Positions 615-61,321 of a stretch of DNA of 64,000 nucleotides are shown here, piece by piece (position 1 is the first letter of the stretch; every line of letters starts with the position of its first letter). Source of the DNA: Epiperipatus broadwayi (lineage: Eukaryota; Animalia; Onychophora). Position numbers and translations under genes: made by a program. The notes beneath the pieces were generated by a model. The model saw only the letters and a list, made by a program, of their open reading frames with translations, was not told where the DNA came from and made no database searches. The stretch spans positions 1,054,001-1,118,000 of the forward strand of contig JAQFVV010000011.1 of the NCBI GenBank assembly GCA_028023455.1. Direction: 5' to 3'.

Positions 615-895
615 CCTATGTTAAGTATGAAGATTGGCTATCTTAATATATATCTGAGTACTTATTGCATATATGTGTGGAAATGATAATCTGGGCCAAC
701 TGATGATTGCTGGTTTAGTATGAAATACGTATATTGGTGATTATTTATCTTTTCGACATATATGTGTTCACGTGTATCAGTGTTATGAGATAGAGTGGAG
801 AGTGGTGGGTCGTGTGAAAGTCTGTGCTCATATATCCTATATATTACATATATTGATATAGGTATATAATAAGCCTGTATTTCAGTTATAACGAC
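615..895 (+). mobile_element. Family A hammerhead-containing SINE-like repeat, copy A1 (diverged)
   Basis: ATAATCTGGGCCAA-CTGATGA(700-706)-stem II-GAAA(722-725)-TACGTA-TA-TTGGTGATTAT, followed by the same downstream module and GCCTGTA 3' end as the copies at 28.8, 45.2 and 59.1 kb. Stem II closing pair is U.U and the B-box is decayed. Confidence 0.8.
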
Positions 896-3493: not shown

Positions 3494-3632
3494 AACAGGC
3501 AAAACTCTCCATACATTAGCACCATTCAATGAAAGCCAGATTAATCAATGGATGCCAGAAGGCTTGTGCATAAAATCCCTATCTAGTGCTTGAGCAAGCA
3601 TAAGAAATGGTGGTCATGTGATCATTATTATA
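3494..3632. repeat. Family C partial copy (no HHR part)
   Basis: AAAACAGGCAAAACTCTCCATAC...GATGCCAGAAGGCTTGTGCATAAAATCCCTATCTAGTGC matches 40255-40345. It is then joined to GAGCAAGCATAAGAAATG, also seen at 40635. Confidence 0.75.
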
Positions 3633-3663
3633 TGTTTTCTACAAACTAATTGAATCATGTTAA

Positions 3664-4720
3664 GAAGAGGCTGGATGTAAGCCATGAAAAAATTGCTGTG
3701 AACAAGTTTTATCTTTAACAATTTACATTGGAAAAGATTTTAAAGATAAATTAAAAACTGGTGTGATTTTTATTGATCCATCAATTTATGATTTGCTTTA
3801 CAAAAAATGGTTTCTAAAAAATTTCAAAAATTTTTAAATACAGAAAAACTATCAATTTACTTGGAAAAATATTATCCAATAGAAAGCAAGTGATACTAAA
3901 TGATAGTTATACATTTTACAGAATGATTCAGTAGAGGATTCAGCTTTCTTATCTATTTTTAAGTAATTTTCCAGTTTACAGAATGCAGGAAATTCATCTA
4001 TAGCAATGACATCACTTTGGAAATCCTTTTCTGAAATAGAAATGTATCTTAATAAGAAAGATTGAGGTCTTATATATACTCCAATAAAGACAATGTACTT
4101 CTTTTCTTCTAAGTAATAGGAAAGCATCTCGTAATATGAATATAATGTTTTGCAACAAAAGATTGAAAAACAATTCTCCCCTGTGGTATTTTAAGACTAA
4201 CTTTGGTTATAAAAAAATGTATCTACTTCATTTCTCTAAATTTTGTTTAAAATAACTTCTAAGAATAACCTCTTTAGAAATCTGAGTGGTATTATTTAGG
4301 ATTATAATGCAAGCACTCTATAAACCATTTTCTTACCAGAGCTTATTCTATTGTTGTATATTGTGCCAATACGTAAGAAAAAATTATGACACTAAACATC
4401 TAGATACTAAATCAAATATTATAATAAAAAGTATTACTGGTTCATTCAAATCTACTTTTCTGCAATTAGTTTCCACTACTTATCCATATTAGTCTACTAG
4501 ATATCAGATGGAAAGTTACTTCACAGAAAATATATATAAAAAACTGTCAAGTAGATCTGATTTACTAATAACTCATGATATAATTTTGCTACCGAAGACT
4601 CATCTCAAATCAGAATATTCAATCAAAATTCTGCAATCAAAGAATTATAGAATAAAATGGATTTCTTATAAGTTTCCAAATAAATTTCTTTTTCCAGATT
4701 TGCCTAAAACCAGTTAGATT
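3664..4720 (+). pseudogene. Decayed non-LTR retrotransposon reverse transcriptase (I/Jockey-group-like)
   Basis: 3664-3835 reads EEAGCKP*KNCCEQVLSLTIYIGKDFKDKLKTGVIFID, resembling the RT motif EQAGFRPxRSCxDQVLxLTxxIExGFxxKLKTxxVFID. 4260-4490 reads KNNLFRNLSG...KHLDTKSNIIIKSITGSFKST, a typical post-RT region. Many stops and frameshifts. Confidence 0.55.
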
Positions 4721-5324
4721 TTATTAGAGTTAGGAAAATCTCATTAGGAGATTGAGGATAAATCATCATCATTATGATCATTTATTTTATAAATGTAATT
4801 TGGACAAGCACAAACCATACATCATATTGTTAATGACTGTCTAATCTATGGCTATAGTTGGAGAATTGAAGCACTTAGCAACTATTAATCCTGTGAACTG
4901 ATTAAAATTTTTTCAGATTTTTTCATAATATTTTACTAATAATTAAGCTATCTGAAAAAGGAAAATCACATGCTAAATAATAAAATATTTAAATTATTTT
5001 GCATAACTGTAGTTGTGTTTTTTTTTTTGGCTACAACCATTTATAATATTCTCTATTATGATACAATAAGGACATGAATAGTATCACTTTCACTTAGTGT
5101 AGTCATTATCAATGATCTTGAATCATCAAATAATTCATTAATTTGGATTCTATTAATTTGAACTTGTTTAAAATAAATCAGATCATCCTTTCCTTTACAC
5201 AATTTCTGAAATGGATAATAAATTTTTTATAGTTTAATAGGAAAAAGAAAAAAAATGATATTGATTTTTATTTCAATGATATATATATATATATATAATC
5301 AAAAAATCAAGTCATATATCATGT

Positions 5325-10619: not shown

Positions 10620-11960
10620 AGGCTAAGTTCTAATTACAAGATATCATCTCAATACATGGTGGACCCCCAAAACTTTTTGGGGTTCCCAATCACTGACCAT
10701 GATGAGAAAAATAATATTGAAAACTCACAAGATTGTACAAACCCTATCAAAGGTTTACCTATCAGTCCATGCGAAGGCTCCCTGCTAAACATGCTTGTAT
10801 TCCTAAGAATAAATTATTACATGTCTGGAATTACATTTACAAAGGCATTTATGAACAGAATCAATTCCATATGCTTAAAACTAATTTGTAAGGGAGGAAG
10901 TAGTTGCCCTGAGTACAAGGATACTATGGAAACCGACCAAACAAAATGGCCTCATTGCATTCTATCCTCACCATTCTCTTTCAAAAGGCATATAACACAA
11001 TTTTGAGATTTACCCAATGTTATCCAAAATTAGACTATATCACCAAAATTGACCCTACCAATTGTCCTCCACCAAGGTGGGGAGAACTGATCATACCCCT
11101 TTATACCGTTATTAGTAAATACCTTCAGATGGGAAATCACTCATTTATAAATAAAATTTCTTATTGGGAAGCCTATAAACTCTCTCATATCAATGATAAC
11201 CCTGAACCCATCCTATTGGGAATAATAAATAACAAAATCATAACCAGGTTCAGGTATTGGAATCTTGAGCCAAAATACATGGACTTTCTACTAAAGCTCA
11301 ACCTGAATGCCCTCTCAACCAATCATTTTTTTGTTTATAGGAAGGGACTATCAAGGATTGACCCTATATGCAGCCTATGTTTAAGGGATGAAGAGACTAT
11401 ATTGCATATATTATACTATTGTCCAACCATCCAGATCCACAGGAACTATATCAACATAATATCTAAACGTGCCACACCTCCTCTGGCTGTGATTACTGAT
11501 TGCTTAAAAGCTTATTCCCTTCCATCAGAATTCTAACCTTTCTAGCATTTACCCTATGGTCAGTGCAACCATATACTTTACACAGACCTTTACTAGTGAT
11601 ATTAAAAAAATATGGCCAAGAGATGGATTATTTGACCTTGTCTAATATAGTGACAGAAACATGGAATTTTGTCGTCCCCCCCCAAGACTTCCAAAATTAG
11701 CTATGATTCTTGATTGATTGTAGCTTTCCCCCTTTTCAGATGATAAAAATATTTATTATAGATATTACTTTGAATGACTTGGACCTATAAATTACCAAAA
11801 GGATTCTACAATGGAACTGTGCAATTTTTTCCTTTTCTCTTTTGCTTTGTTAAAAAACTTTCACCTAATTATTATCCAAAAATGTAAACCTTAGATATAA
11901 TAGAGTTTTTTTCTTATTTTAAAAAACAAACAAAAAACAATTAATCAAAAACAAAAACAA
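10620..11960 (+). mobile_element. L1/Tx1-type non-LTR retrotransposon 3' fragment (end of RT plus zf-RVT)
   Basis: FLGFPI motif (ORF 10656-11006), DPICSLCLRDEETILHILYYCP zinc-binding motif (ORF 10946-11536), frameshifts, and an A-rich tail at about 11920-11960. Confidence 0.85.
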
Positions 11961-14600: not shown

Positions 14601-15458
14601 AATGAACTTCTTATGAATTACTAAGCAATAAAGCTATTAGATTATTCATTTATTCTTTTTGGATTTTTTTTAATATTATATACACATGTATATTTTTCAT
14701 AGTACAAACTATTTCTTAGGTTGCTATTTTTTTTTTTTTTTGTAGGAAATGTTTTTCCCCCTAAAGTATTACTTAAGTTTACCATAAATGTTTAGATTTG
14801 TAACTTTAGTGGAAGAATAATCAATTAATACAGAATATCTGTAACAAATCATAAAGTGTCAAATAAGATTAGTTACTCATTTAGGATTAAAACAAAGCCT
14901 ATCAAGCCATTACATATATTGTCACAAATGCGGGAGGGGGGGGATAATATAGCAGAAACAGCCATTCAGAAATAAGGGAATAAACATCCCAACTCCAAAA
15001 AGAGATGATATAGATCATGAATAACCTTTAATTTTCTCTTTTAACAAAAATCAATATGATTCTCTGATTCTAAATGCAAATGTGATTTCCTAAATACTGC
15101 ATCTTTTCAAAAGCAAATTATTTATTCTACTACACCTCTGCAGAACTGTAATAGAATAAACAGTTTGCTTTTGAAAAGTATCGAGTTAGCAGGTGTCATG
15201 GAATACCTTGTTTGGTTTTGTTTTTCCATCTTATTTATATTAATCTGTTCAAAAGATCAAGTAATATCTAAAAACTAAAGTGGTAAGTATGGAATATTAT
15301 CCAGCATCCCCTCTTTACCACTTTTAATTTGTAATTATAAATATGTGACTTTTTTCGCATATGTTAGTGAAGCTATAATTATACTATAACGTGTAATATG
15401 TCTGCTTAGCGCTTTCAAGATTTAATATTCAAATCTCATACTCATATCTCTACAAATG

Positions 15459-15564
15459 AGGGTTAGGGTTAGGGTTAGGGTTAGGGTTAGGGGTTAGGGT
15501 TAGGGTTAGGGTTAGGGGTTAGGGTTAGGGGTTAGGGTTAGGGTTAGGGTTAGGGTTAGGGTTA
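15459..15564 (+). repeat. Interstitial telomeric repeat (TTAGGG)n
   Basis: 16 complete units (13 TTAGGG and 3 TTAGGGG) plus partial units at each end. Confidence 0.97.
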
Positions 15565-15834
15565 TTGTACAATATGCAAATGAGTTTGAATTTTTAATTA
15601 GTTAGTCCATTGTTTGGAGAGAGCAAAACATGCCTCTCTTCTATTAATGGCACAGAGATCATTTACTACGTAAAAAGCTTCTTTGACTTTTCTTTTGGCA
15701 TCACTCTTCTCTGTGCAAATTATATATTTCGTTCATCATCAATTTTTGTATGTATAGGGATGAAAATAATTATATATAAGATAAAAAATTCATAAAATTA
15801 CCTATGCAATTATCTGTAGACATATAAATGCAGC

Positions 15835-20685: not shown

Positions 20686-21029
20686 TTTACAAGACATAAT
20701 TTATTAAGGACATTTATTCAAACTTGCAAAAGCATTAGAGCAAAAAATGAATCATTTATGTCTAACTTCCATGCTGTTATACGAATAATAAATCAATCGT
20801 TGATATTCAAAGGAGTAAAACTTTATATTAGAAATGATCGTTATAGTGTCTAAATCAAACAAGCTTAATTATTATTTGAGATCAGAAGTATTATAAACTT
20901 TCACTTTTTTGAGAATTAATGATTAATTTATTATCTATATATCAGGATGGAAGTTATTTAAAATGAGTCCATTTTATGTTTGATGAATAAATTAGCATGG
21001 CTACAAGAAATAGAGCATCCTTTACAATA

Positions 21030-21905
21030 TTAATAATTATTATTAGTCATTCATAAGACTAGAAATTATTCATTTAATGAATAATGTATCTGTCACTACA
21101 TCACTTTTATTTAAGGTAGGGAATGGGTTTTATCCACTCTTAGCACCTTGTAGAGGAGTGTAATCATAAACAAATGATCAAAGTCATGTGAAAAAAATGT
21201 ACACATTTCATGCTGAATCAGCACTCATAAAGTTGGTCCAAAACACAAACTTTTACACATATCTGGTCATTGTTCAGTATACATAGATAGCAAATTACTA
21301 CAATTTAATTGATAAGTGTCAAACTTATTGCCCTCACAACTTTGACACAAACTACTTGATGAAAATGTATTAATAATTTTTATTAGTCATTCATTAGACT
21401 AGAGATTATCCACTTAATGAATAATATTTCTGTAGTGTAATTTTCACTATTCCACTCTCATGCAAGGTAGGGACTGGTTTCTATCCACTTTTAACACCTT
21501 GTGGAGGGTGTAATCATAAAGATATGACCAAAGACATGTGAAAAAAATGTATGATCTCCAAGGTGCACATTTAATGCTGAGCCAACACTCATCAGTTGGC
21601 CAGAGCATAGTCTCTTACACATATCTTTATTATTACTCAATAGCATATATATAGATAGCCAATTACTACACTTTAATTGATATTGATAAAGATATATATA
21701 AAAGATTATAATCTGGGCCAACTGATGAGTGCTGGTTCATCACAAAATGTATATCTTGGGGATCATACATCTTTTTCATGTCTTAGATAATATTTATGAT
21801 TACACTACTCTACAAGATATTAAAAGCAGAGAGAAATCAGTCTCTACTCTAGGTGAGAGTGGTTTAGTAAAAATTATACTGCAAAAATATTATTCATTAC
21901 TTCTT
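21030..21905. repeat. Family B cluster: two minus-strand tandem monomers (period 340 bp) plus one plus-strand copy head-to-head
   Basis: TATTAGTCATTCA at 21041 and 21381. HHR motifs at about 21205-21240 (-), 21555-21600 (-) and 21722-21760 (+), each with core substitutions. Confidence 0.85.
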
Positions 21906-24510: not shown

Positions 24511-25719
24511 TTAAACATTAATAAGCATTTTGGTGTCTTTTTCACTGCCAATTTTTTTGACCAATGAGATTTCAATTCTGAGCTCTGTAAACCAGTCATG
24601 ACCAATGAGAGGGTTTATGGGGTCATGTACAATATATAGCGGCAAGTTTGAAATGTTGCCTTTATTACTCGTAATTTGAGCTTGGACTACACCCTTAATT
24701 TTTATTTCTTTACCATTTACGTCCAATGCTCTAAGCTTAGTATTGCTAAGCCTAGGGGGCTCTCTTATTTCTGCCCTGATCGAATTCCAGTCGGCTACGG
24801 ATATTAAAGAAATGCTGTTACCGCTGTCTATTTCCATCGACAGGGGTTTTCCATAAACTTTCACAGTAGTAATAAATTTCTGTGCTTGATTTATAACCAT
24901 GTTATTTATAACAATATTACATTTGGTATTATTTATACTTTGTATATTATTTCCTTTAACTTGGTCAACTGTTCTATTTTCACACATTCTCGCCATGTGA
25001 CCTATTTTTTTACACAGTCTACATTGATCGTGTTTGAAATAGCAATCTTTAGCTATATGACCTAGTTTTCCACAACAATAGCACTTTGTCCGACTTTTAT
25101 TTGTCTGTTTAATAGTTTTGTTATTGACAGACCTTTGTTGAGTTTTTCAACACCAAATATTCCTGTTTGATCGCTATGAACGCCTTTTTTCAAAGCAAAT
25201 TCTTTTGCTTGCTCCACCACTATTTCGTGAGCGATACTGCGTTTGATAGCTTCACGATAATTTGTCTTTATCAGCCAGTAACTGCTGCCTCAAACTGTCG
25301 CTATTCATTCCTTATAGGAATTGTTCCAGTAGCGCTTCTTCTAAATATGAATCATAACAGCAGTTTTTTGCGAATTTGCATAGGGCTGAGTCGTAATCCT
25401 GCGTATTTTTGTTTCCGCCTTGATGGCGATTTCGAAAATGAAGTCTGGCGATGTGCCTAGACGAGCGAGGATTAAAATAATTTGACAAACGATCTTTTAA
25501 CTCATTGTAGGTTAATTTTTCAGGAGTGTTGGGTTCTGCTAATCTGTTAGCTATTTGTATGACCCCTTTTCCTGCAAAACATAATAATGTCACTGTTTTA
25601 TACGCATCTTCCTCTACTCTGTTAATAAAACAGTAATTTTCAATCTGTTGAACGTACAGGGGCCACTCATTTGCCTCTCTGACGTCAAACTCGGATATTG
25701 TCGATTGCATTTTAAGCAA
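24511..25719 (-). pseudogene. gypsy gag-protease (interrupted)
   Basis: Gag N-terminus EFDVREANEWPLYVQQIENY...LKDRLSNYFNP; two CCHC knuckles CYCCGKLGHIAKDC and CRLCKKIGHMARMC (about 24980-25085); aspartic protease MEIDSG (24820-24837). In-frame stops. Confidence 0.88.
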
Positions 25720-26672: not shown

Positions 26673-28719
26673 TTATTGATTATTATAATTTGTTTTATAA
26701 ACTTCCATCTTTTCTTATTTCAGATTATTCAAAATAATTTGGAGGCATCAACAAAAAAACTTTGCACCAGGGTAACATAAAATCATATAAAGGTCCTGCT
26801 TGGAAAGACAGTCATCCTGCAGAATATTGATAACTAATAACAATGATTATCATAGTCTATTTGAAATAAATATGTGCATACATATTATTATTATTATAGG
26901 TGTTGGTAATTTCATCATTTGATTTTTATCTTATTACATGCTCACAAAAATTATTATGTACAGTACATATCTTTCTGAATCTGCGACTGTTTGTAGACAA
27001 AATTGCATTTAGATAATCTTCGTAATGTCAATGAGATTTCCTATGAAACCAAGCTCAAATTCACTATATTTTCAGGAAGTCTTGTATTCTTGATTCCATA
27101 TCCAGTGTCTTTGAAATCTTTCTAATGTAAATGACATCAGCTTCACCCATGAAAACAAAATGGCTTATTATTTCAAGTCACTCATTAAAATTTATGATCT
27201 AGGTGTAAACATTGCAATTGTTAGACTAATTTGGGGCAAGTAATAGCAATCACTGCCAATAATAATCAGTGTTTCTATAATATCCTGTTGTCTTATTACT
27301 TAATATGTCTTGAGATAGAAAACAACATACATATTAAGTGAAAAAATAGTAAAACTAATAAGACTGATATTACTGCTTTTCAAGTGGAGTTCATGGGAGG
27401 ATTAGTATTCAACTTGACCTATTAAATAATAATGTTTTATTTAAATCGGGTTAATTATTTGGTCGTAGTTAATTTAATCTATCCTCGGACAACTAGCTTA
27501 ACGTGCATATTTTAAGATGTCCGTTTATTTTAAAAAGATATAGAGTTAATAACATTTTGATTTCATAGTAATCATAATTAAAACTACCACAATTGTTGAT
27601 TTTTTAAAGAAATACACATTTTTATAATATCATTTGCAATTCTTATAATAAAAGCATTCGTAAATTTTTATTAAAAAGGAAATATTACAAATATGAATGG
27701 AATCCTTCCATTTACAGGAAACATTCCAGTCATGCCGAAGAATCTAATCACGTGATTCTCATTATTTTAATTTGCTGATTTTTTAAAATTTTATAATTCA
27801 TAGATGCTTGTTTTTTTCTTCTTATTAACAGTTTTAAAAATGTTAGTGTAATTAAAAATAAAACAAGTGTCAATTCAAATAAAATATTTCAAGTTCTGAA
27901 AGTTTTAAAAAATAATCCACTGATAATTGCGAAGGCAGATTGTCCATATAATGAGATTTAATTGCGTAAAAAATAATTTTTTGGCTAACAGTTTATTAAA
28001 TTACATAAATGTTAAAGTATGTGTATGTATAATATGTACTACATATACACATTGATACGCAAAAAAAAGAAGTAGCAGTTAAGACAGTAGGTTATTACAA
28101 TACTACGGTATATGACAAAATCAGTAGATATTCGTCAAAATAACAATAATGTATGTGATACTATGCATTTAATAATATGATGTAAGCCACCTTTTATATT
28201 AAATCTGTTTAAATTTTATATAGACTGGGATTATATAACATCTGAATAATCTTTAGAAGAAAATGGCCTGTTCTTATAGAAAAAAAACTAAAGTTTTTCC
28301 AGAGATGTCAATTGAAGATAAATGATCTTCATTCACTAAGACTGACCTCAGAAGCTTGACAATATTTCAAAAAATGATTGAGAAAAATATGGAAATGGTG
28401 TAATATTATTACGTTTTTCAAGCTAAATTTGAATACATGGGTATGTTGTCTGGCCTGCAGCAGCAAATTAATAAGTTCTATCACAGTTGGTCTTTTCAAC
28501 TGCAGATCAGGCAAGCAATAATTTGTCAATTAAATACCATAACTACATTATTTCTAAAAAATATATATTGTAACTATCAAAAGTTCGTGCTAACGACAAT
28601 AATAAGGATTCTCGCAGGGATTTTAAATGTGCACGCAAACTAATGCATCGATATATAATAAATAATAATTATTAATTAACTATTCTTTCTTTCATTAATT
28701 TATAGTTGAATATTTTTAG

Positions 28720-29062
28720 TGTTGGCAGTATCAAAACTATAATCCCTTTCAATGAAATGGAAGGCTGAAGAGTTGTGGGTTGAAGTAGTTTAAAACTTAT
28801 CCATTAAAGTATGAACATTGGCTATCTTAATATAAAGCTGAGTACTGATTATATACGTGTGTGGAGATAGTAATCTGTTTAACTGATGAGTGCTGGTTTA
28901 GCATGAAATATGTATATTGGTGATTATTTATCTTTTCAACATGTGTGTGGTCAGGTGGGTCAGCAATATGAGATGGCACTGAGAGTTGTGGGGCGTGTGA
29001 AAGTCTGAGTTTGAATCCTGCATATATTACATATATAAATGCAGGTGTAAGCCTGTACAATG
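28720..29062 (+). mobile_element. Family A copy A2 (longest)
   Basis: Upstream part homologous to the reverse complement of 55400-55530; HHR; A-box-like TGGTCAGGTGG (28948-28958); B-box-like GAGTTTGAATCC (29007-29018); 3' end GCCTGTACAATG. Confidence 0.85.
28870..28928 (+). ncRNA. Type I hammerhead ribozyme, core intact
   Basis: CUGAUGA 28883-28889, stem II GUGCUG-GUU-UAGCAU, GAAA 28905-28908, stem III AUAUGUAU, predicted cleavage after A28916. Stem I is UUAA/UUGG plus distal UAAUC/GAUUA with a bulge. Confidence 0.75.
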
Positions 29063-29514
29063 TGTTAATTATAAAACAAATTAAATTACTACATTATAAA
29101 ATTAAAAAAAAAAAAAAGAATGTCATGTAACCATAGATTACCAATTATGTGATGATGCAAAAACACAAAAGTCAAAGTAATTCAATAAATATAAATAAGC
29201 TTCATTTATAAACGGACAATAATATTAATTAAGGTTATCAATAAAAATAAAATCAGATATTTTCTTAGACTTTTATACATATAAAAACTAATAACCAAAC
29301 TAATCATGTTTAATGTGTGTGGTCGTAGTTTTATGCGTTGTTAAGACAAGCTATATTTTAAAGAAAGGTTCTTTAAAATAGCATCAAATGAAGTTTTTAA
29401 ATAGAATTATTACATATTTAAAATATTTCGTTTTAACTGATCTTTATTCACCATTATGTCATCAGTCTTTAGACTTTGTGTGCTTCTTTCATATAATTAT
29501 TATAATCATTTTAT

Positions 29515-29863
29515 GTAATTAGAAGGGTTTGAATTCAAACTTTCAAGTTCCCTACTGCTATTCACTCCATCTTACACTACCAATACACCTGACCACATAC
29601 ATGTGAAAAAGATTAATAATCTCCAATATATATATTTTGCTGAACCAACCCTCATCAGTTGGTCCAGATCATCATCTGATGAATGCTAGTTCAGCACAGA
29701 ATATACGTAATTGAGATTATTTATCTTTTCCACTTGTATGTGATCATATGTATTGACTGTATAAGGTAGAGTGGTTAGATGTAGAGAGCTTGAAAGTCTG
29801 AGTTCAAATCCCTTCTAATTACATTAAGTTTAATATAGACAATTTACTTGTATTTATATATTG
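29515..29863. mobile_element. Family A head-to-head inverted insertion
   Basis: Minus arm 29515-29672, plus arm 29676-29863; 12-bp direct repeat TAATCATTTTAT at 29503-29514 and 29864-29875. Confidence 0.8.
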
Positions 29864-31059
29864 TAATCATTTTATTATATTCTCATAAGTGCAACTACCC
29901 TATATGTGTAACTCTATAGAATACAGAATGCCTACCAGGCTAAAAATATAAATCACAAGGAAGTTTCCTTTACTGAATAATTCTACAACATTACACCAAA
30001 GAACTCATTGCCATGGGGACCAAAAATATTTCTAGAGATAATTATCTTTAAACTTCAATTATTCAAAAATATGATTCTAAAGGACACACTTATGAAACAT
30101 TACATCAATGCTTCCAAAACAACGTAGGATAACGAGAAACAACTCTATTTTTTAATTTCTACCATTAAAATATTTAATAATCTCTCAATGCAGTACAGAT
30201 TGGAATTATTATCATAAAAATCAATAGAACATAGCAATATGTATATATTATAATTATAATTATTAATCTTAGCTAAAAAAATATTTAACAAACAGCCTTA
30301 CTCTAACAACAAACATGCACACACATAAATAATATAATAATTTAAATATAATTATAAATTTTAATAGTCAAATAACTGCACATCCGAGTTTCTGATTCCC
30401 ATTCTTCTATTAACTTATTATGAGAATTTTATATTAATAGCAACAAGATAAATAATAATAATAGTAATAAAATATATATCCTATAAACTAAGGTTCTTTA
30501 AAAGTCCTTGACTTTTCATGAAGATAAAATTCTGATGCTTCTATTCAGAGATTTTATGTTGATACTAATATTCTAATCCTTTGACACTTCTATTTTGTGG
30601 AAATTTTAAAAACAATGCTATTATTTACTTTTAAAATGAAACCATTTATGCAGACATGTTACACAATATGTTATATCCAAAATAGATTATTTTTCTCCTT
30701 TTATATTCTAGAAAATTAACAGTATTTTCCCAGACAATTTGACAGATTTGAAATTTCAAAAACATTTTAATTTCATTATTTTGTGCAATCTTATTTGTCA
30801 TGAAGTTTCATATGTGTTGCTTATTCATTTGAAAAATCCAAAAAGAGCCATTTTCCCAAAGGAAAATGCTTTGTAAAAAGCTTTCTGGTTTTAAATTTTA
30901 AAATGACTATCTAATAAAGCTATTTATATATATAGAAAGTTAAAGTTAAGCAGGCAAATCTAGGTAAAGCTAAGAGAGAACAATTGGTCTAATGCTGTCT
31001 TATTTATAGGGTTTTATTAATGTTATAAATTGTCATCATTGATTTGTCCAGTATTTGCT

Positions 31060-44038: not shown

Positions 44039-45108
44039 ATACATCACGCGTGGCAAATGTTAGCCGATTATCCCATTTATTTAATATTTTGTGATGCTAT
44101 TTTTATCCTGCATCAAACTTTTTTTCTGTGAGAACAACTTACTTAAGGTAGTCTTATCCTTCCATTGAAAGCAATCAATATTGTATTTCTATAAAGTATT
44201 TTTGAAACAATCTTTATAATATAAATGGGACCTATCTCACTTATCATACTCAAGTTGATCTATTATAAAATATTTTATTAGAAAATCTTGTATCATTTTC
44301 ACATGTCGAATCCAGTGAAGATGCGATTTTATAATAATAGAATCTGATCCAATAAATATATTCTTCAACAAACTGAAGAATATGTAAATTAGTCTTATGA
44401 TCTTGCAATTATATTTGTAGAATATAATGAAGCATACTTGAATGAAAATTTTCAAATACCTTTATATTATACCAATCGGTACAGTAAACTTTATCCAAAA
44501 AATTATTGGAAGTAATGGTCTTGTTTTTGTAAACTCAAGTAATCTGTTATTATTGAATTTTTGCACAACCCATGGATTGATTATCAGGAACATTTTGTGT
44601 AGATAGAAAAATGGCTGTAACGAAACATGAACGCATTCATACTCAAAACAATGGCATCTAATAGAGTACATTATAATTAAGAATTAGAATGCAAAAGAAA
44701 AGTTATACTGTGGTGGTAGCATGCAATGGCAGATTAAAACCTAACATTAGCAAAATAATCTGCATCCCAATTATTAAGTGCTTTCAGGAAATGATCTTAA
44801 TATACATGATAAAACAAAAATCAGAGAGTTGGGATAGAGGGAGCTAATGTCATTTTCAGAAAGAACTATTATAGAAGAGAGAGGTATTATTTTAAAAAAG
44901 AAAAAAACACAAACTACTTACACATAATTTATTTAATGTTTCCACACACTCTAAATTTTAAAGAAGATATTTAAAATTTTTATTTGTTAATATATCTTCC
45001 TTATCTTCCATTTAATTACAACTACCAAAGTTTCTTGTGCAAAATGATTTTTTTTTTTTAGTTCGTAAAATAATTTATTTTTATGAAAAGTTTACTAAAG
45101 GAGTTTTT

Positions 45109-45331
45109 CGAACTCAGACTTTCATACGACCTACTACTCTTAATGCCATCTCATATTGCTGACCCACCTGATCACACACATGTTGAAAAAATAAATAATC
45201 ACCAATATACGTATTTCATGATAAACCAGCAATATGAGATGGCATTGAGAGTAGTGGGTCATGTGAAAGTCTGAGTTCGAATCCCGCATATATTACATAT
45301 ATAAATGCAGGTTTAAGCCTGTACAATGTAT
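45109..45331. mobile_element. Family A inverted insertion
   Basis: Minus arm (includes the 3' half of the HHR) is joined at CAGCA microhomology to a plus arm with B-box GAGTTCGAATCCC and the 3' end. 13-bp TSD TAAAGGAGTTTTT (45096-45108, 45332-45344). Confidence 0.85.
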
Positions 45332-45641
45332 TAAAGGAGTTTTTATAAAAAATAATTTGAAGCTATATGTATGTTAAATTCTTTGTCTGAATGTATATAG
45401 AGATACCCAGGCAATCACGAATTATGTCCTGCCATCACTATTTGTTCTAACAACTCCATGTTCATATCCATATTATAACGTTAATAAAATCTTTATATTA
45501 TTAAGTCATCTATCCACAATTTATTTTATTTTAATTTTTTTTTTTTTTGAGAATGTGTTCTTTTAATGATGTAAATTGTTTTTATTATTTATAAATTTAT
45601 ACATAAATTTTATGCCTATAAATAAGCACTTTTTACAATTA

Positions 45642-48840: not shown

Positions 48841-50321
48841 ATGATAACGAGTTACTAATCTAACCAATGTTGGATTATTTAATAGCTCTTATGTGATAAA
48901 TTTGAATGTAAATTGTTTTCTATTAATTTTGATTTAGAAAAAGATTCGTCCAGTGGAACACATGTTAAAGGTAATACTAGGAAAACATGTAATGCTATTG
49001 TAAATTTAGAAACAGTACAATCAAATGTGACAAAAGATAAATAATTCCACAATTTCTAACACTGTTTTGTAAGAAAATTAAATAACTCCCTTCCTTCTCA
49101 TTCAATTTCTGAAGAGAAACGGATGCATATTGTATTATAAAGTCTGTGTTTTTGATATAACTAACTAAACGCTGATATTTAAATGATTTTAATGCTAATA
49201 TATATCACCATGGCCCGCAATTTATTAATCAATGGATGGATCCATTTAAACAAGATGATAAAATAAGCTTAAATAGTAAAATAATTTTTTACTTTTATTA
49301 TTATTACAAATCTAAATGTGGCTATGTAGTGTGTTTTGGCAACTAGCACCTTGGCACGAAATGATCCTGGTCATGCGCTCTCAAACAACGAATCAAAATT
49401 TTATTTCTTCAACTATTGTTATGATTAAAACAATAATAATCTAATGGTTTATTGTTTGAGAGTTCATAAAAAGTTCCAAGTACCGAAAGTTACACGCTGG
49501 CCACGATTCATAGATTTTTAGCTCCACTGTCTGATACTTTACCACGGCAACAAACTATGCAAGTCATCAAAAACATTATCCAATAATATAGAATCGATTA
49601 TTGCGAATATCGATTCTGTATTTTATTACGTAATAAATATAATAAACATACAGAAACGATATTCTTAATAATCTATTTATTATCAATAATAACATTTATT
49701 CAACAATGTGTAATATAAATATTAGTAAATTCACATTTTAAAAAATATTTGGAAACAAAAATAAAATAAATATAAGTGAATTTGAAACAATTTTTGTTTT
49801 TTATATTACCTGATGGTTTTAAAAACTTAATCACGATTGCAATAAAAAATTATCGATTACTTTAGATAACTTGAACAAAGGGTAAAAAATAAGAAGAGGA
49901 ATTCTAAATGAAATCTTTTTTAATAAAAAGAAAAAATAAATAAATTTCATAGTTTATATATTTAAAAAAAAAAAAAAAAATTTAATAAATTTCATAGTTT
50001 ACATTTTAAAAAATTATATTTTTTAAATTTATATTTTTAAAAAGTTGTGTTCACGATGAGCAATAAGTAACGAAAATAAAAAAATAAACCTTTTTAGATT
50101 CAGAGCTTTAATATTTCATTATAGTTTATATCCAATGCCTACAGGCTTGTGGATAGTTCATAAGTAGAATTAGAATTAAAAATTCAGATAGAAGAGTCCC
50201 GATTGATTCACATCTCTGTAAGTTGAATGCAATTCTCAGTCTGGATAATAGTCAATATAAAAATACTATAATAATAATGCAACAAAGTATAATTTTTATT
50301 AACATTGTCAAATAAAGTATA

Positions 50322-51196
50322 GTGTAGTTGTAGAATCGCAGATTCTGGATGTCAAGGGCATGTGGTGCAGCATTAAATGACAGAGACTGGAGCCTAAAGT
50401 CAATGAGTGCAGGGATAAAATGACAGATTCAGGAACTCAAGGTCATTTGGTACAATAGTAGAATGACAAACCCTGGAGACTAAGGTCATTTGGTGGAGTA
50501 AAATGACAGATTTTGGAGGTCAATGTCATTTGGTAAAGTGCTAGAATGATAATTTCTGGAGCTCAAGGTCATTTGATTCAGCAGTAGATGACAGGTTGTG
50601 GATCTGAAGGCCATTTGGTGCAGTGATAGAATAAGATTCTGGATGTCAACATCATTTGGCAGTGATAAATGACAGAGATTGGAGCTCAAAGTCATTTGGT
50701 GTAGGAATAAAATAACAGACTCTCAAACTCAAGGTCATTTGATGTAGTGGTAGAATGATGACTCTGGAGTTCAAGATCATTTGATGCAGCAGTAGAATGA
50801 TAGGTTGTGGATCCGAAGGGCATTTGGTGCAGTAGTAGAATGACAGACTTTGGACATCAAGGTCATTTAATACAGTGATAAATGACAGAGACTGGAGCTC
50901 AAGGTCATTTAGTGCAGGAATAGAAGAACAGACTATGGAACTCAAGATCATTTGGTGCAGTGCTAGAACAACAGACTCTGGAAGTCAAGATCATTTGGGC
51001 AATGGTAGAATGATAGATCTGGAAGTCAAGATTATGCAGTGAAGGGGGTAAATGACAGATTTTGGAGGTCAAGGTCATTTGGTGTAATGGCAGAATGAGA
51101 TTCTGGATGTCAAGGTTATTTGATGCAGTGATAAATGACAGAGACTGGATCCCAAGGTCATTTTGTGCAAGCACAGGCTCTGGAACTCAAGGTCAT
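50322..51196. repeat. Minisatellite, about 43-bp unit, about 20 copies
   Basis: Consensus approximately CAAGGTCATTTGGTGCAGTGRTAGAATGACAGACTCTGGARCT. Confidence 0.92.
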
Positions 51197-52241: not shown

Positions 52242-55204
52242 TGCATTAGATATTTTTTGATACAATAAAAGTAACAGATAGACTCTAAAAATGATATCAT
52301 AATCTTATCATATCTACAAACAGTAGTAACAAAATATTTTAAACAGATGGTAAAATTATGATCATCTAAATAATGTTAAAAAATTTAAATGACTGCTTTT
52401 GATATATCCATTTTATCAATGTATTTTAACAGAGATGTACATTATAACGTAATTAAAAGAATTCTTTGTAAACTTAAAAATGGAAAGGTTGGGAAAGTTT
52501 TAAAATATGATAATAATATGTTAGCTTTATCCTACATGACTCAGTATTCAATGGTAAAACGACAGATTACAAACATGGCTTAACCATGTTAATTGTAAAT
52601 TACTTTTAAGGTTTGATACTGTGGTAGGGTGGCAGACTGTGGAGTTTAAGGATCATAGTTTAGTTCTGATGCTTTTGATGATTGGACTTTTATGCACCCT
52701 TAATCAATAACCCATTTGTTTATTTATTTATTTTCTTATATGGTAACATTAAAGTATTGTATTTGTTTTTAAAAATATATAAAGTCATGAAAGATTAAAA
52801 TTTTTTTTGATGACTTTAAACCCAATCTGATTTTAAAACATTAAAAACACTATAAGGAGGCATAGTTCATTAAAAAAAAAAAAAGCCGTAAAATAAGAGT
52901 ATGATTTTTAGACTTATATAATATTATCAGCTGGGCCAAGATTTTTGATTTAGTTATTCAAAAAATTTGTGCTATTGTTTGAAAATTACTAGTTGTCCTT
53001 TAAAGTTTATTTATTTTCTGCAGCTGCTATGTTATGGCATAAGATTAAGTACTATTACGATAATAAAAGATTGGGCATTTGAAATGTAATCCGATATTGA
53101 ATTGGTCTCAACTTTACTTTTTCATTTTTTGTAACATTAGGCTTTGGAACAGACTACAGAACGTTTCATGAAGAAAGAATGAAGATGAGACAGATTTAAT
53201 GATGGAGTTTATAATGTAAACTGATTAAAAAGTTAAACTTCAATTTCTTATCTTCTAGATTTACAGTATTATGGTGATTGTTATTTTTCCCACTTCAAAG
53301 GATGATCTACAGAAAGTTCTTAATGAAATCCATAAAGACTTTATTAATTAATGTCTATAAAACTCAAATGTTTTATTATGTAAAGTGGAGTTAGATGTCG
53401 TTAAATGTAGTTTTGGCTACATTTAATAAATTAAAATCCTATTTTGATACAGTATTATAAATATTTTGACTAAGTTAGTTGTACATAGAATTATCGTTCA
53501 GCCATGTTTTTTTTAAAATCTAGAAATAAAAATTATGTAAAGGCTCTGGTAATTTTTACTTTGAGTATGTTATGTAATATTCCTGTTGTAACAGCTTTTC
53601 TTTATTGGTTTGAGTATTTAAAATTAACAGACATTCTAAAAAATTATTCCAGGTAAATTTGAAAATGGTTTTTGTACTTTAATGTGGTGCAAACATGTTA
53701 CTTTCAATTGGAGAATATGGTAGAAGCTTAAATGAAATGGAGAGCTATAATTAGACAAAGTTGTTAAAATTTTTCAAAAAAGAGTGCATTCTAGAAGAAT
53801 TTAAAAGTCAACATCAATAGGTTATAAATAAATGGACTAAAGAATTAACATGTGTGTGGGAGTATATTTGTATTTCATGGATTTATTTGCAAAATCAATG
53901 CATTGTCTTTTTTCTTCTTCTAGAAGTAAAGTAGTGATCAGTTGCGGGTGGTCCAAAGGCATCGTGGCACTTCAGCACTCCCAGAAAAAAATTAATTATT
54001 AAATTTGTGTTTTTAAACATTTGAAATTTTATTCAGAGACACTGCTAATGATAGCATTTCCAGAAACTTAATATTTGGTGAAATTTTAGCAACATGCATA
54101 AGTAGCACGTGGAACTGCTTACTCCCACAGTGTCAGTAGTTATTTGAGCGTTAGGGCACATAAATTTTGATTGTTTTTTTTTAGAATGAGCAATAAAATG
54201 TCTGCTTTTTTCTTGTAGTTAATACTTATAAATTAACCTATAAATATTTATTGCAGTAAAATATAACAAAATAATAAAATAAATATTATTTTAAATATTT
54301 ATTACGATTGGAATTTATATATAAAAATGTATTTTTTTAATTGTCATTACATGAAAAGATTGAAATGAAAAATAAAAAAAATCAATCTACTACAAATATC
54401 ATTATTTATCAAACAGCAGTTATAATTATAAATTTATTTAAACGCACATTGATTACGTAGAGGTCCCTACTATCGCATTTTTACATGCACATTCTTGAGG
54501 TTACAAACTTAGTAAATATTACAAACAGCAGTTAGTAATACAAAAAATACAATAGAAAATGGATATATAGTTGCGACATTAGAAATGATCTATTTTGTTT
54601 TCTTTGATCAAGTTTTGGTAGCAATACTGTAATAAAGCAATCCTACTTAAAAATTTCACAGAGTACTACTGGTATTAATACATATTAACACACACATATA
54701 TAAATATTGAAAGTTTAATGAGATTTTTCATATATTTTTTAATTAAAGCTCATCTCAAGATATAACTAACCAAGCAACTGATTAAAAATTGGATCAATAA
54801 AATGAAATATCCATCAATAGTAACTCCATTACTTTGATCACTACAACTCAGAAGTGGCTTATAGAAATCCCCCTCATACATGTACTACTATTGGAAAAAA
54901 TATATTTCAGTTTATTGATTCAATTTTTAATTGATTAGTTGTTCAGTTATATCTTCAACTGAGTTCTATTTAAAAAAAAAAAATCATAAAAAATCTTAAC
55001 TGTTAATATTTACATTTATAAAGTCCATTCAAATTTCCTGTTATATGTATAAATATTTAAATTATAATTTAAATAATTACACATAGGATATTTTTAGTGG
55101 GTAACATTAATTTATATTATTTTTATTGTCAAATTTTTTGCTAATTATTGGTGTTTTTTTAAGTGGTATAAATATAATGCAGTCTTATATTTGTATGAAT
55201 ATTT

Positions 55205-55530
55205 TATGGTTTCTGTTAAATATAGGGGATTTGAACCCAGACTTTCAAGCACCCTTCAACTATACACACTATCTCATACCACCGATAGACCACACACATG
55301 TAGAAAAATAAATAATCACCAATATATGTATTTCGAGCTGAACCAGCACTCATCAGTTAGTCTAGATTATGATCTGGCATATATATATATATAATCAGTG
55401 CTCAGCTTTTACTTTAATGGACAGGCTTCAATCTACTCCAACCTCCAACTCTTCAGCCATCTATACCATTGAAAATCTGATGATGGAATGTCCAAATCTC
55501 ATGCTGATGCCAATATTATTGTTATGCCCA
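55205..55530 (-). mobile_element. Family A copy A6
   Basis: Minus strand: upstream module, HHR, TGGTCTATCGG, B-box GGGTTCAAATCCC. Confidence 0.85.
55312..55372 (-). ncRNA. Type I hammerhead ribozyme, core intact
   Basis: AUAAUCUAGACUAA-CUGAUGA-GUGCUG-GUU-CAGCUC-GAAA-UACAUA-UA-UUGGUGAUUAU; one U.U mismatch in stem II. Confidence 0.72.
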
Positions 55531-55756
55531 TGTTGACCGCAAGTCAAATCTGAACCTGATTTTTTTTTTTGTAATTGGTATTAAATTTTTAATGAATGTT
55601 ATTTTCAGAGTTTACTATATTGTATATACATAATGAAATTGTTTTCGTCCTGTCAAATAATAAGATAGAATAAACTGAAACACTAAAAATTTTAAAATTA
55701 AGTCTTTATCACTATACTCTAGATAAATACTTTGCATATAATAGAGATATATATGA

Positions 55757-55825
55757 AAGATAGTTCTGGCCCAACTGATGAGTGCTGATGCAGCACGAAA
55801 TGCATGTTGGGGGGCATTTGTCTTT
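55757..55825 (+). ncRNA. Type I hammerhead motif with G at the cleavage position (predicted impaired)
   Basis: CCAA-CUGAUGA(55775-55781)-GUGCUG-AUG-CAGCAC-GAAA-UGCA-U-G(55806)-UUGG. Confidence 0.8.
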
Positions 55826-56210: not shown

Positions 56211-58832
56211 TATTATATCTTTTATTTATATGAATTTAAAAAGAATGGAGAAGTATGGAGGTGTTTATTATATCTATTTCTGCAAATTCATATACTTATG
56301 TTTTTTATACATTATAAATATATAATTCTCTTAAGATTACTATTATTGTGCAGACGAAAATTAAACTCCAGTCATAGCCGTAACTATTATAAATCTCCTC
56401 GCACTATAATAGTTATTTCTGGACATGATCAGAGATTAATTTTCTTCTGCGCAATTATAGATTTTTCAGCACTTAATAATAGATTATTGTTACTATCAAT
56501 TTTACCATATTTGTTTCTTATACAGTTGTATTTAATTAAATATAAAATAATAATAAACATTTATTTGTATCTTATGTTTATTGATTTTTTTCACCTTTAC
56601 AAATGCACCTAAAAGTTAATTAACTAAGGTTCACACTAATATATATTAACGCAGGTTTCAGGTTTCTAATTTTATATTTTATTGTGTTTTATAAAACCTT
56701 TAACTAATGTTTTATAAGAATTTTTAAAAAAAAATAATCTAAAAACTTATTTTAATTAAGGATTAAGTGGAAAACAGTGTATATCGTCATTAATCAATTA
56801 TTCTTTCAATATTTTTTTTAAATCAATAAATTTTACTTTTTAATTAAAAATATTTATACAACCAAAACGCACACAACACATATATAAAATCTGTATGTGA
56901 AATAATTATTTGATTGCAGTAATATATTATTTTCTTTCTCCTTCTTTTGCAAGTCAGATTTTATTGCCGTACTGAATCATTCAGTTTTATTTCCAATGCT
57001 GTTCAATAAGTAAAAAGAACCATTAATCTCAGCTGTTTAACTGTCTTTGCGTGAGATTAGCTTATCAAACTATTTTTCATTACATAATGTATGATATGGT
57101 TACTCTTTTATCAAATATTATTCCCCCCCCCTTCCACAAAAAAGAATAATATTAAAAATTCACTATTGTAAAGAATTTTTTTTTTTTTTAAAAAAAAATC
57201 AATAAATCGGGTTTACTATATACTCTATATATATATATGCTTCTAAAAGGAGATATTTTCACTTTATTCTAGAACCATTTCTTAAATAATCAATGAATAC
57301 CAAATAGTATAATGTTATAAAATTCTCGTCTCCAAATGGGGTTTAAATTTAAATCTAAAATTAAGGCACAATTAATGTCCTAAAATTAGGAAGTCTTGAA
57401 TAGAAAATAGTGAGCTCAATTGCATGGTCATATAACTCAAACACCAGGGCAGTTTTTTTTATATATTTTAGAAATCCCAGTTTATCACAACTTTAAGCTA
57501 CTCCTAGTCTTTAGCTAAAAATCTTGCTACTAACTACAAATATCATATGAATTTTTTACATGCTCTTTAAGAACAATTATCTTTACTTTAGAGCCATCTA
57601 ATGTAAACTTGTGTAATTAATAGGCATCAAGGTGGTTTGGTCTTATTAAATCTCCATGGGGTATTATTTGGTATCCATTGTTTACTTAAATGCTTCCAAG
57701 ATCACCTATATTCATCCTATACTAGAATAATCTATTGTAAGTTTGAGAGAATCAATGGTCACCAGGTAGTGTAGGATTAAAAAATTCTCATAGTGATAAT
57801 ATTACATAGTGTTCATTGACTCAAACTTACTATAGGTGGTTCTAGAATTGGCTAAATATAACTGGTCTTAGAAGTATAGGAGCAAGCATATAAGAAAGTC
57901 ATGGTATTGTTTTGATATATATGTCTGCATATTTATGTAACAAGAAGATTAACAAATTCTGACCCCTGCCATTATAAACAATTGAATTGTCCTCTAGTGA
58001 TTGTGCACTTGTTCAACTTTTACAGAAAGAAAATGTTCACTTCTTTCAACATGGTCAAGATTTCATATGGATGATTGATTTGAACTTGCAAGCAATCAGA
58101 GAAGTAAATATTAAATCAGCCAAGATGTTTAAGGCAAATTTATTTTAATTGACTGATATTTAAATTTACAGTGCAGAATTATTTATATTTATTTTAAGAC
58201 TTTGCAAACAAATTATCAAGTATCAGATTTGTAATGACAGAATTTTACACTGATAGAAATTATGTAACAGTCAGACAACAATCTCAGAACATAATATACA
58301 CAATATAAACAATCGAACTGACCTCTAGTCGCATTAAATTCTTCCTGTGCCCTGAGATACTATATTGGCAATGGATAATTTACTAAGCAATAGGTTATAA
58401 TTCTTAATTGGAAGAATTGCTGCAGATCGATGGTGTGTCCTGATTATGCTTTAAATATAATATTTCACTTTTTGAAATAAATGCAAAAGCTTTTTCCTTA
58501 AATAAACACATCTTTATTTCTATCAAATTGTTAATTTAAAGATAAGAGTTTGGGCTAGGTTCATCTATTGATGCTGCTGGGGTCTTCAAAACTATGGCTT
58601 TATGTGTTTGGGTTGCATTTTAACTTTTCAAATAATTCATAAAATTACAAACTTGGCAATTTTAATTTGTGATACATATATATATATATTGCAACCGTGC
58701 AAGATGTGTTGGCAATTGAATTCAAAGATTTTGCTGAAATGAATATATATATAAAAATAAAATAAAATAAAAATACATTTGATATAGATATAAATTAATA
58801 TATAGAATAAATATTTTATTGGATTAAAATTA

Positions 58833-59254
58833 AATATAGGGGCTTTGAACTCAGACTTTCAAGCAACCTTCAACTATCCGTACTATCTTATACTATTGAT
58901 ACACATGACCACATATATGTAAAAAAGACAAATAATAACCAATATACATATTTCGTGATAAACCAGCACATATCAGTTGGTCCAGATTATGATCTCTCAC
59001 ACACACACATACACACACATATATAATCAGTGTTCAGTTTATGATTATATAAATATGTGAGAGATGATGATTTGGACCAACTGATGAGTGCTGGTTCAGC
59101 ATGAAATATGTATAATGGTGATTATTTATCTTTTCTACATGTGTGTGGTCATGTGTATCAATAGTACAAGATAGTATGGATTGTGTTGAAAGTCTGAGTT
59201 CAGATCCCTTATATTTATAATTAAGTTCCAGGTATAAGAATGCCTGTATTTCAA
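58833..59254. mobile_element. Family A head-to-head inverted insertion inside the 5' LTR
   Basis: Minus arm 58833-59035, plus arm 59040-59254; 12-bp TSD GGATTAAAATTA (58821-58832, 59255-59266); absent from the 3' LTR. Confidence 0.88.
59065..59125 (+). ncRNA. Type I hammerhead ribozyme, core intact, first stem I pair mismatched
   Basis: CCAA-CUGAUGA(59081-59087)-GUGCUG-GUU-CAGCAU-GAAA(59103-59106)-UAUGUA-UA-AUGG. Confidence 0.7.
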
Positions 59255-61321
59255 GGATTAAAATTAGAAAATTTCTTTTTCTTGATGCAATACACATTGT
59301 GTTTTTTTTCTTTTCGTTCAATTAAAAAAGAGCAAGTTTAAATAATAAAAGCGAATACTGATAGTAAATATTGATAGAAGTTCTGCAAAGGAGAGATTGG
59401 TAATTAAATATGACCATCGTAACTACAAAAAAAAAAAAAACTTTGGAGAACAAAAATTGAAAGAAAGGTAAAAGTTTGAAGAAGGAATGTGGGTGGTATT
59501 CAATGTACACATGTGTAATGAGTTTTTTGATGGATATAAAAGGAAAGGACATAGATAAAGAACTGTCTTTGGTTCTTCAGATTTTTCACAAAATATTAAA
59601 CTACCCCATGATAGCTGCTGATATTCAGATGAGTGGCTAGAATGCCTGACATCACTGATTGTTCCGTTCCCTCGAACAAACTTATGATGATTTAGAAGAG
59701 TGAAGTTGCCACCTGTTATAAAATAGAAGCCTCGCATCAAAGCTGGAACCTAAAATACAGATCGTGAGGATTACATGCATTACCAAAGAACGATTCTACT
59801 AAGCAATCTTACTAGTAAGAAATTAGATTTTTGAACTTTTATTGAAATAACTAAGAATACTTACTTCTCAAACCAGAAGAAAAGAAAACATAATTTAATG
59901 GACCATAATGAACTATTTATGTGGTTAATGAATCCATCCAATAAATAATTTTGCTATGATAATACAAATAATTTTTTTGTTGTTTTCCTTTTATTGAAAA
60001 TGCTTGTAAATAAAAAAAAGAGAGAATTACAATGTATCATTTGTTTAAGCCTCGTAATTTTATTCTTTCAGCAATCTTCTTTGTAAAATTCAACTGTTGA
60101 TGCCAACACAATTTTTATTATATTTTTAGATTTATTATTTGTGAGAATATAGATATATAATATATTTGCATTAGTTTGTATAAAGATTATAGAAATAAGT
60201 TAATATATGGGTGATTTATTCATTCATGTTATAGAGAGGGTTTTGGTGTGGCATGGCAAAAGGAGGGAGGGGGATTTATCTTCATTGTCAATTTAATAGG
60301 GATAACTAAATTGAATCCTGGCCCTAATAAAAAAAACAAATTTAAGCTATTAAAAGCAACAATATAGGGAATGTTAGTTAGGTGTAATTAGGATCATATT
60401 ACCTGGGAAATATACTGCGCTTATGCTAAAACTTAAAATGGTTAACTACAATAATCTAGATTAGGTGTGGGAGATAATAGGTATATCTTTAACAGATATA
60501 TATAAAACTCATCTTACAGTGCCAATGTGTAATAAAGGGAATTAGAGATATATATAAAATAGCACAATGGCTGCCCAAACAATGGGTCTCGAAAAAATTC
60601 ATGACCTGAGATAAAAGAAATCAAGGAGAAGGGTGTTATTAATGTATTTGCAGCTTGGATTGTGAATGCAATATATTGTGATAATTTATGTGACAAATTT
60701 TTTTTTCCCCCAAGATGCAAACAAGGAAAATGTGAGTTGTTAATATATTTGGTAATACACTATTCAGTTGAAATAAAATATAAATAAAAAAAGTTCTTTT
60801 GAATAAAGAGAGGGAGGGGACAGGTAATGAAATCTCCCTTTCATTTTCTATCATTTTGTTAGGTAAAAATAGGGCAGAAATAACAGATAATCACAAATGT
60901 ATACAAAAACAATGCAAGTTTTTTTTTGTTCTATCTGTTTCATGGGTGGTGGTGTAATATTTAGACAGCAATCAAAAGTGCTGGCAGGGGAACAAAGGAG
61001 GATCAGCATATGTTAAAGAGTAAGGTAAAATATAGGGTAAAAATTAATAGTATTAAAAAATTTGTAAAAGAAAGGGAATATATATGAGCAGTTTTTTTTT
61101 GACACATCGAATATATATATAACAGTGGAAGGAAAATAACATTAAATGATTGTTCAGCAATTGGCTAGCATATATAATTATAGTAGAAGAAGCTGAAGCA
61201 AGCTCAAACTGTACATAAACTAAAAGGAATAGACAATCTCATCTGTGAGTGGGATGGGTGGACTATTAATTTTGTATCACAAGACTGTCCTAAGATTGGC
61301 ATACATATAAATGATGTAAAA

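Follow-up and report, generated by a model that had tools for sequence, protein, structure and literature searches.

Family A, a short, non-coding, dispersed repeat found in the window (the whole stretch of DNA that was analysed, 64 kb), is likely a non-autonomous hammerhead retroelement of Penelope-like (PLE) type, similar to a derivative of a pseudo-LTR and a 3′ end that carries a PLE-style dimer-type hammerhead. The likeness to PLEs lies in insertion anatomy and hammerhead architecture; a PLE enzyme, the nature of its template and any ribozyme activity are what we infer for family A. The kind of element to which it belongs is already described, so that the assignment to an undescribed family of hammerhead SINEs in an earlier note on this DNA is not supported, and family A opens no new class of element.

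Copies of family A and their insertion anatomy

A BLAST search of positions 28600–29150 against the window, combined with a MAFFT alignment, identified nine arms in six insertion units. Within the window the arms are 69–93% identical to the copy at 28720. Every copy listed in the earlier note was recovered in this way, and the picture given there of a mobile, short, dispersed, non-coding family with a type I hammerhead and a bulged helix I is supported. The arms follow one layout, in which an upstream module with a (TA/TG)n stretch is succeeded by the type I hammerhead, a T-run, a tRNA-like block and a 3′ end without poly(A). The GC content of family A is about 28%, and the window as a whole is AT-rich animal DNA (GC 0.25–0.34). 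No Pfam domain was found in the family A region, which contains only junk ORFs.

Three of the units are solo copies, all with the long form of the 3′ end described below. The 28720 copy (about 28746..29066, + strand) is 5′-truncated and is an old member that has diverged from the family majority. It is a real copy, as had been claimed, but BLAST extents and alignment let the homology begin only at about 28746 and no convincing TSD encloses it. A second 5′-truncated copy lies at 623..887 (+ strand; BLAST extent 623–879), and the longest copy, of about 390 nt, occupies 55170..55560 on the − strand. Searches for TSDs around the solo copies at 28720 and 615 gave nothing convincing. For the longest copy a possible flanking 10-nt direct repeat with one mismatch was seen, which is weak evidence of a TSD.

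The other three of the six insertion units are head-to-head double insertions. In the unit at 29498..29875 a (−) arm with the short end (29515–29660; BLAST extent from 29512) faces a (+) arm (29676–29858) with a 36-nt tail. The unit at 45093..45344 consists of a (−) arm (45109–45231; BLAST extent from 45107) ending inside the B-box and a (+) arm (45227–45328) with a 49-nt tail. At 58821..59268 a (−) arm with the short end (58835–59004) and a (+) arm (59042–59254) with a 41-nt tail are separated by a (TG/TA)n spacer. All three pairs are enclosed by one direct repeat of 14–17 bp with a single mismatch, located exactly at the outer ends of the arms: 29498–29514 and 29859–29875 (16 of 17 positions identical), 45093–45108 and 45329–45344 (15 of 16), and 58821–58834 and 59255–59268 (13 of 14). 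Among comparable pairs of the window, direct repeats with one mismatch reached at least 14 nt by chance in about 2% and at least 16 nt in about 1.3%. Since one TSD encloses each pair and such repeats are rare by chance, each head-to-head pair represents a single insertion event.

Comparison of the arm ends revealed two classes of 3′ ends, 36–49 nt apart, and not the single end just after GCCTGTA that had been proposed; the long form runs 5–6 nt past this motif. In each of the three pairs one arm stops within the B-box block or at most 13 nt after it and the other arm is 36, 49 or 41 nt longer, an asymmetry seen in these three pairs only. The additional sequence, the ‘tail’ (29020..29066, + strand, in the 28720 copy), is present at long-form ends only and includes a hairpin (29017–29045) and the GCCTGTA motif. 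The stem of this hairpin shows a double change between subfamilies, CCTGCAT/ATGCAGG versus CCTATAT/ATATAGG. The two ends are located about 100 and 150 nt downstream of the predicted hammerhead cut. At the opposite side, the 5′ ends of the solo copies vary (about 28746, 623 and 55560). No two pairs have the same inner junction. No head-to-tail tandem of family A was found in the window.

The 351-nt sequence of the 28720 copy was compared with sequencing runs; 12–27% of its sampled words occurred in runs of at least seven organism labels. Contigs of four runs from three organisms were then aligned at 80% likeness. Per run, 1,400–5,100 contigs cover exactly the element and the neighbouring pair, with unique flanks at or near zero; at the 28720 copy, cover is confined to 28704–29111 and the flanks have a depth of 0. 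Heavy cover of the element with near-zero unique flanks indicates that family A is a high-copy family common to related species. Joints between opposite strands were observed at varied positions in contigs of all four runs.

The hammerhead module

In the 28720 copy the hammerhead module spans 28856..28938 (+ strand), as supported by the sequence itself, a regex descriptor, MFE folds, pair counts and a covariance model match of 84.6 bits. The 5′ strand of helix I is followed by the core CUGAUGA (28883–28889), helix II (28890–28904), GAAA (28905–28908), a minimal palindromic helix III (28908–28915), the predicted cut after 28916 and the 3′ strand of helix I. The conserved type I core examined comprised C3-U4-G5-A6-N7-G8-A9, G12-A13-A14, the 15.1–16.1 A-U pair and H17 before the cut. 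Seven arms include this region, and by alignment and regex the core is complete in four of them, at 28883, 59081, 700 and 55356(−). It is broken in the alignment in the remaining arms, 58976(−), 29658(−) and 29676(+).

Ten modules from four families of the window were used for pair counts. Standard pairs filled 89.8% of the pair cells, compared with 36–55% when the partners were slid; the values for the individual helices were 88% (helix I), 91.5% (helix II) and 94% (the helix III palindrome). Covariation in these ten modules was no better than in shuffles because the module sequences are close relatives. MFE folds recovered the long helix I with its internal loop and a 6-bp helix II. For the dimer, MFE folding returned only the trivial full self-duplex, which is uninformative on helix III. 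Throughout the hammerhead families of the window, helix III is a minimal palindrome of 6–8 nt, reading AUAUGUAU in the 28720 copy and AUGCAU and GUGCAC in sister families. The family A majority is AUACGUAU, and the corresponding exchange, 28911 T>C, accounts for 66–86% of the contig depth.

A covariance model built from the hammerhead alignment of the window matched 14 modules in the 64 kb. Rfam, which the earlier note had proposed for a check, gave neither a hammerhead nor a tRNA match: in stretches of 1.3 kb, 3.6 kb and 221 nt no hammerhead family, Hammerhead_1 included, was matched at gathering score or at E ≤ 10. Hammerhead variants with a minimal helix III are known to evade standard descriptors (PMC4209133). 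The dimer-type architecture with a large helix II and a small palindromic helix III is typical of metazoan and Penelope hammerheads (PMC4209133). Judged by descriptor and not by a curated model, the family A module has the core and the three helices of a type I hammerhead, and its cleavage is predicted. Matches to miRNA-hairpin and C/D-box-like Rfam models were rejected as chance, caused by the fold-backs and by UGAUGA/CUGA letters.

A comparison of 28881–28938 with 21695–21777, 55748–55830 and 21540–21622(−) showed that at least four families have this module, about 80 nt long and 74–79% identical, in front of downstream sequences that are unrelated to each other. This indicates that the ribozyme module is shared or exchanged between families. 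One sister family forms a partial direct tandem (55715–55889 and 56098–56275; 91.6% identity, 383-nt spacing). Its cores, at 55775 and 56160, are intact, and its helix III palindrome is AUGCAU; its layout resembles a pseudo-LTR or a retrozyme dimer. The (−) copy of family A at 55170–55560 is located about 150 nt to the left of this tandem in opposite orientation. A further hammerhead family at 21028–21899 comprises tandem (−) copies (21028–21314 and 21368–21682, 75% identity) and an inverted (+) copy (21690–21899). This arrangement of a partial tandem plus an inverted copy is typical of Penelope-like insertions; no clear TSD was found around it. Metagenome searches with family A motifs gave 0 and 18 matches, all of them due to chance and none a member of family A. 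Two marine metagenome contigs among these chance matches (L004:1066–1083 and L007:3389–3406) carry an unrelated, complete-looking hammerhead-like motif, CUGAUGAG followed by a 6-bp hairpin and CGAAAC.

The tRNA-like block and the T-run

The order of modules given in the earlier note was borne out, with an A-box-like site 31 nt after the predicted cleavage site and a B-box-like motif at 29007–29019. Between the ribozyme and the ‘A box’ the 28720 copy has a T4 run (28933..28936, + strand), which is part of the 3′ strand of helix I. According to the alignments, every hammerhead module in the window has a T4–T7 run at this place, downstream of the cut and ahead of the A-box-like site, where it would act as a Pol III terminator. 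The A-box-like sequence itself, TGGTCAGGTGG (28948..28958, + strand), is weak and variable among the aligned copies. It matches TRGCNNAGTGG at 9 of 11 positions in the 28720 copy and at about 8 of 11 in other copies; position 4 is never C and is deleted in one copy. In addition, three of the four runs show A instead of G at the third base (28950) in 61–87% of the contig depth.

The B-box-like motif is the 3′ strand of a small hairpin (28998..29019, + strand; 4–5 bp stem, 8-nt loop), which is the most conserved block of family A and forms invariant columns in both alignments of the family. The family majority, GAGTTCGAATCCC, agrees with the B-box consensus GGTTCGANNCC; at 29012 and 29019 the exchange T>C predominates in three of the runs, out of four. 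RNAalifold predicted no pairs other than a 4-bp hairpin with the B-box as its 3′ strand, with an overall energy of −0.16 kcal/mol. The exact B-box 10-mer GTTCGAATCC would be expected about 2 × 10−4 times by chance in such a consensus, as estimated from the base composition. Because an exact B-box is this improbable by chance, the block is probably a real relic of a tRNA T-arm. Function as an entry site of reverse transcription would account for its conservation at least as well as function as a promoter.

Evidence for a complete tRNA was not obtained. ARAGORN at default settings detected no tRNA, whether it was run on the window, on single copies or on the consensus; the Rfam tRNA model gave no match at E ≤ 10. 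Matches appeared only at ARAGORN thresholds of 80–85%, with poor stems and with anticodons that did not agree among copies. At the 80% threshold, 4 of the 30 matches in the window fell on family A, which makes up 3.3% of the window, an approximately fourfold enrichment; about 2.5% of shuffled consensus sequences scored as well as the family A consensus in relaxed searches. Together with the exact B-box, this enrichment leaves some probability to a tRNA/Pol III connection. Of the proposed pair of boxes, the B-box-like motif is very good and most conserved, but the A-box is poorly conserved. With a weak and polymorphic A-box, no cloverleaf in ARAGORN (default), Rfam or RNAalifold, and a T4–7 run in between, the designation as a tRNA-like Pol III promoter is not supported. 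A start of the SINE type was not observed either, as the copies reach 60–400 nt upstream of the A-box-like site and have variable 5′ ends. Every inserted unit reads through the T4–T7 run, which makes a Pol III transcript unlikely as the template.

These data bear on an explanation modelled on the Sm-alpha repeats, in which family A is a ribozyme-SINE, the tRNA-derived block functions as a Pol III type 2 promoter, and in tandem master copies this promoter transcribes the 5′ module and hammerhead of the next unit into the RNA that is retrotransposed. Sm-alpha/Sj-alpha of Schistosoma are likewise dispersed and combine a hammerhead with tRNA-type Pol III boxes, as Ferbeyre et al. (1998) and Laha et al. 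(2000) are summarized in PMC2770079 and PMC6765202. Such an origin accounts for the majority B-box as the most conserved block and for the relaxed ARAGORN matches at the homologous place in four copies, where about one is expected. Furthermore, read cyclically, the unit consists of a tRNA-like head, body, hammerhead and T-run as in Sm-alpha (PMC6765202). Nevertheless, we consider it unlikely. In the account of Sm-alpha given in PMC6765202 the promoter precedes the ribozyme, whereas the block of family A comes after the ribozyme and the T-run. The tRNA part of Sm-alpha copies is called a tRNA-Gln pseudogene by tRNAscan-SE according to the passage on these repeats in PMC2770079, whereas family A fails ARAGORN at default settings and the Rfam tRNA model, lacks a supported cloverleaf and has a weak, polymorphic A-box. 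The hammerhead of family A also has no match to Rfam Hammerhead_1, and its GC content of about 28% and the motif sequence indicate another family and host. Moreover, every unit has hammerhead, T4–7 run, tRNA-like block and 3′ end in one piece, and thus the template read through the Pol III terminator and began at least 200 nt upstream of the A-box. The head-to-tail tandem that would serve as a master is not seen for family A in the window.

In the longest copy of family A, the 5′ portion (55475–55560, −) contains a look-alike of the B-box block in reverse complement (GGGCTTTGAAC-like). The same look-alike also occurs in contig ends of run X6, in the loose-end consensus before 28747. It may be an inverted remnant or may form a panhandle between the 5′ and 3′ parts of the element.

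Probable Penelope-type retrotransposition and alternative explanations

Insertions of PLEs are highly 5′-truncated, often have an adjacent inverted 5′-truncated copy, and frequently carry a tail of 30–40 bp at one end only (Craig et al., 2021, PMC8557442). Purified PLE protein (PAc) cuts and extends both DNA strands and prefers AT-rich targets (Frangieh et al., 2024, PMC11167929). Its substrate is uncleaved RNA, on which reverse transcription starts at two adjacent internal stem-loop sites, 111–118 nt into the ORF and about 85–92 nt past the hammerhead cut; the sequence between is the tail (PMC11167929). Family A shares with PLEs the 5′ truncation, the inverted copy in one TSD, the one-sided tail and the AT-rich targets (PMC4209133, PMC8557442, PMC11167929). 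Its hammerhead, too, is of the dimer type, in which helix III is palindromic and helix II long, and its 3′ end is located about 100–150 nt past the cut. Two differences are evident. Family A has no ORF, the post-hammerhead segment of the window consensus being closed after about 26 codons, and it carries a B-box/tRNA-like block at the presumed entry site of reverse transcription.

Based on these likenesses, the following mechanism would account for the copies in the window. The template would be a long, uncleaved transcript that does not end at the T-run; its probable source is transcription by Pol II or read-through. A PLE reverse transcriptase/GIY-YIG endonuclease would cut both strands of an AT-rich target with a stagger of about 14–17 bp, and one or both cut ends would prime reverse transcription at either of two internal sites about 100–150 nt past the hammerhead. 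The first start site would be the conserved hairpin/B-box block and the second would be located 36–49 nt further. Synthesis of cDNA would halt at variable points, and priming by both ends would yield two cDNAs joined head to head. The expected outcome is a mixture of solo 5′-truncated copies and fold-back pairs; each pair would be enclosed by a single TSD and have a ‘tail’ on just one of its arms.

The presence of upstream sequence in the copies supports the earlier proposal that the mobilised RNA is uncleaved and begins far ahead of any internal Pol III start. The multimeric or circular forms of this RNA that the earlier note also considered are not required, since the PLE-like footprint of head-to-head arms in one TSD, one-sided tail and 5′ truncation explains the retained upstream sequence. 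In the 64-kb window neither an autonomous PLE with the same hammerhead or 3′ module nor any PLE ORF was found. A 165-aa ORF in frame with the hammerhead-core AUG at 56163 was rejected as a Penelope ORF, being of low complexity and having no Pfam domain.

If the Penelope-type reading is correct, family A is a compact natural example in that insertions of only 200–450 bp directly display the odd features of Penelope-type integration, namely that both strands prime, that reverse transcription has two internal start sites and that the tail is one-sided. The family would also provide a small defined RNA, the hammerhead plus about 150 nt, for mapping what a Penelope reverse transcriptase recognises, and support the recent view of animal hammerhead repeats as non-autonomous Penelope derivatives. 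A rather speculative extension, to which we assign little probability, is that the T-arm-derived block was captured for two roles, as the entry or initiation site of a Penelope-like reverse transcriptase and as a TFIIIC/Pol III B-box that drives or insulates neighbouring units. In that case family A would be a genuine hybrid of the Pol III SINE strategy and Penelope-type retrotransposition.

The second alternative is the classical animal non-LTR retrozyme, whose tandem transcript is cleaved to monomers that are circularised by tRNA ligase and copied by rolling-circle reverse transcription. Animal non-LTR retrozymes are short (170–400 nt), low-GC and non-coding and contain a type I hammerhead (Cervera & de la Pena, 2020, PMC7229834); the family A unit of about 390 nt and its long TSDs agree with this description. 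The neighbouring family with its partial tandem at 383-nt spacing (55715–55889, 56098–56275) points in the same direction. In runs guessed to be RNA the contig depth over the element was very high, with thousands of contigs, a pattern that low-coverage DNA of a high-copy repeat would also produce. Retrozymes are, however, defined by head-to-tail tandem arrays and circular RNAs, and family A is represented in the window by solo copies and head-to-head pairs, with neither head-to-tail copies nor permuted ends. Its 3′ ends fall into two defined classes and its 5′ truncation is graded. No go-back (circular) joint within the element was found among the 15 joints listed out of 136, a structure that contigs are poor at showing. 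On balance a retrozyme of the classical kind seems quite improbable for family A. This explanation overlaps with Penelope-type retrotransposition because the literature now treats retrozymes as PLE derivatives: an origin from PLE pseudo-LTRs, as their non-autonomous derivatives, has been proposed for them and in Xenopus shown phylogenetically (PMC7229834; Li, Clavereau & Pollet, 2026, preprint, 10.64898/2026.07.22.740005).

A fold-back DNA transposon (MITE), whose inverted arms would be terminal inverted repeats for a transposase, is very hard to reconcile with the data: three inverted-repeat units are flanked by direct repeats and their central hairpins even score against miRNA-precursor models, but arm lengths, junction points and spacers differ in each unit, the outer ends are asymmetric by 36–49 nt, the TSD length varies between 14 and 17 bp, and there are also single arms, which share this 3′ end but vary at the 5′ end. 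Like the reading as a plain satellite, it was rejected on insertion anatomy.

Other repeats of the window were recorded beside family A. A pair of LTR-like direct repeats of about 500 bp (59267–59770 and 63430–63933; 88–92% identity) lies 4.16 kb apart, and its left member adjoins the family A fold-back at 58821–59268. Decayed ORFs for gag and an aspartyl protease of an LTR retrotransposon, with weak Pfam matches, are located at 24511–25719 (−), and a zf-RVT remnant at 10946–11536 (+). At 15441–15577 there is an interstitial (TTAGGG)n array, about 130 bp long, in which an extra G occasionally occurs. Finally, positions 50286–51176 contain a degenerate tandem satellite with a period of about 42–43 nt, higher-order periods of 85 and 128 nt and a strongly positive local GC skew.
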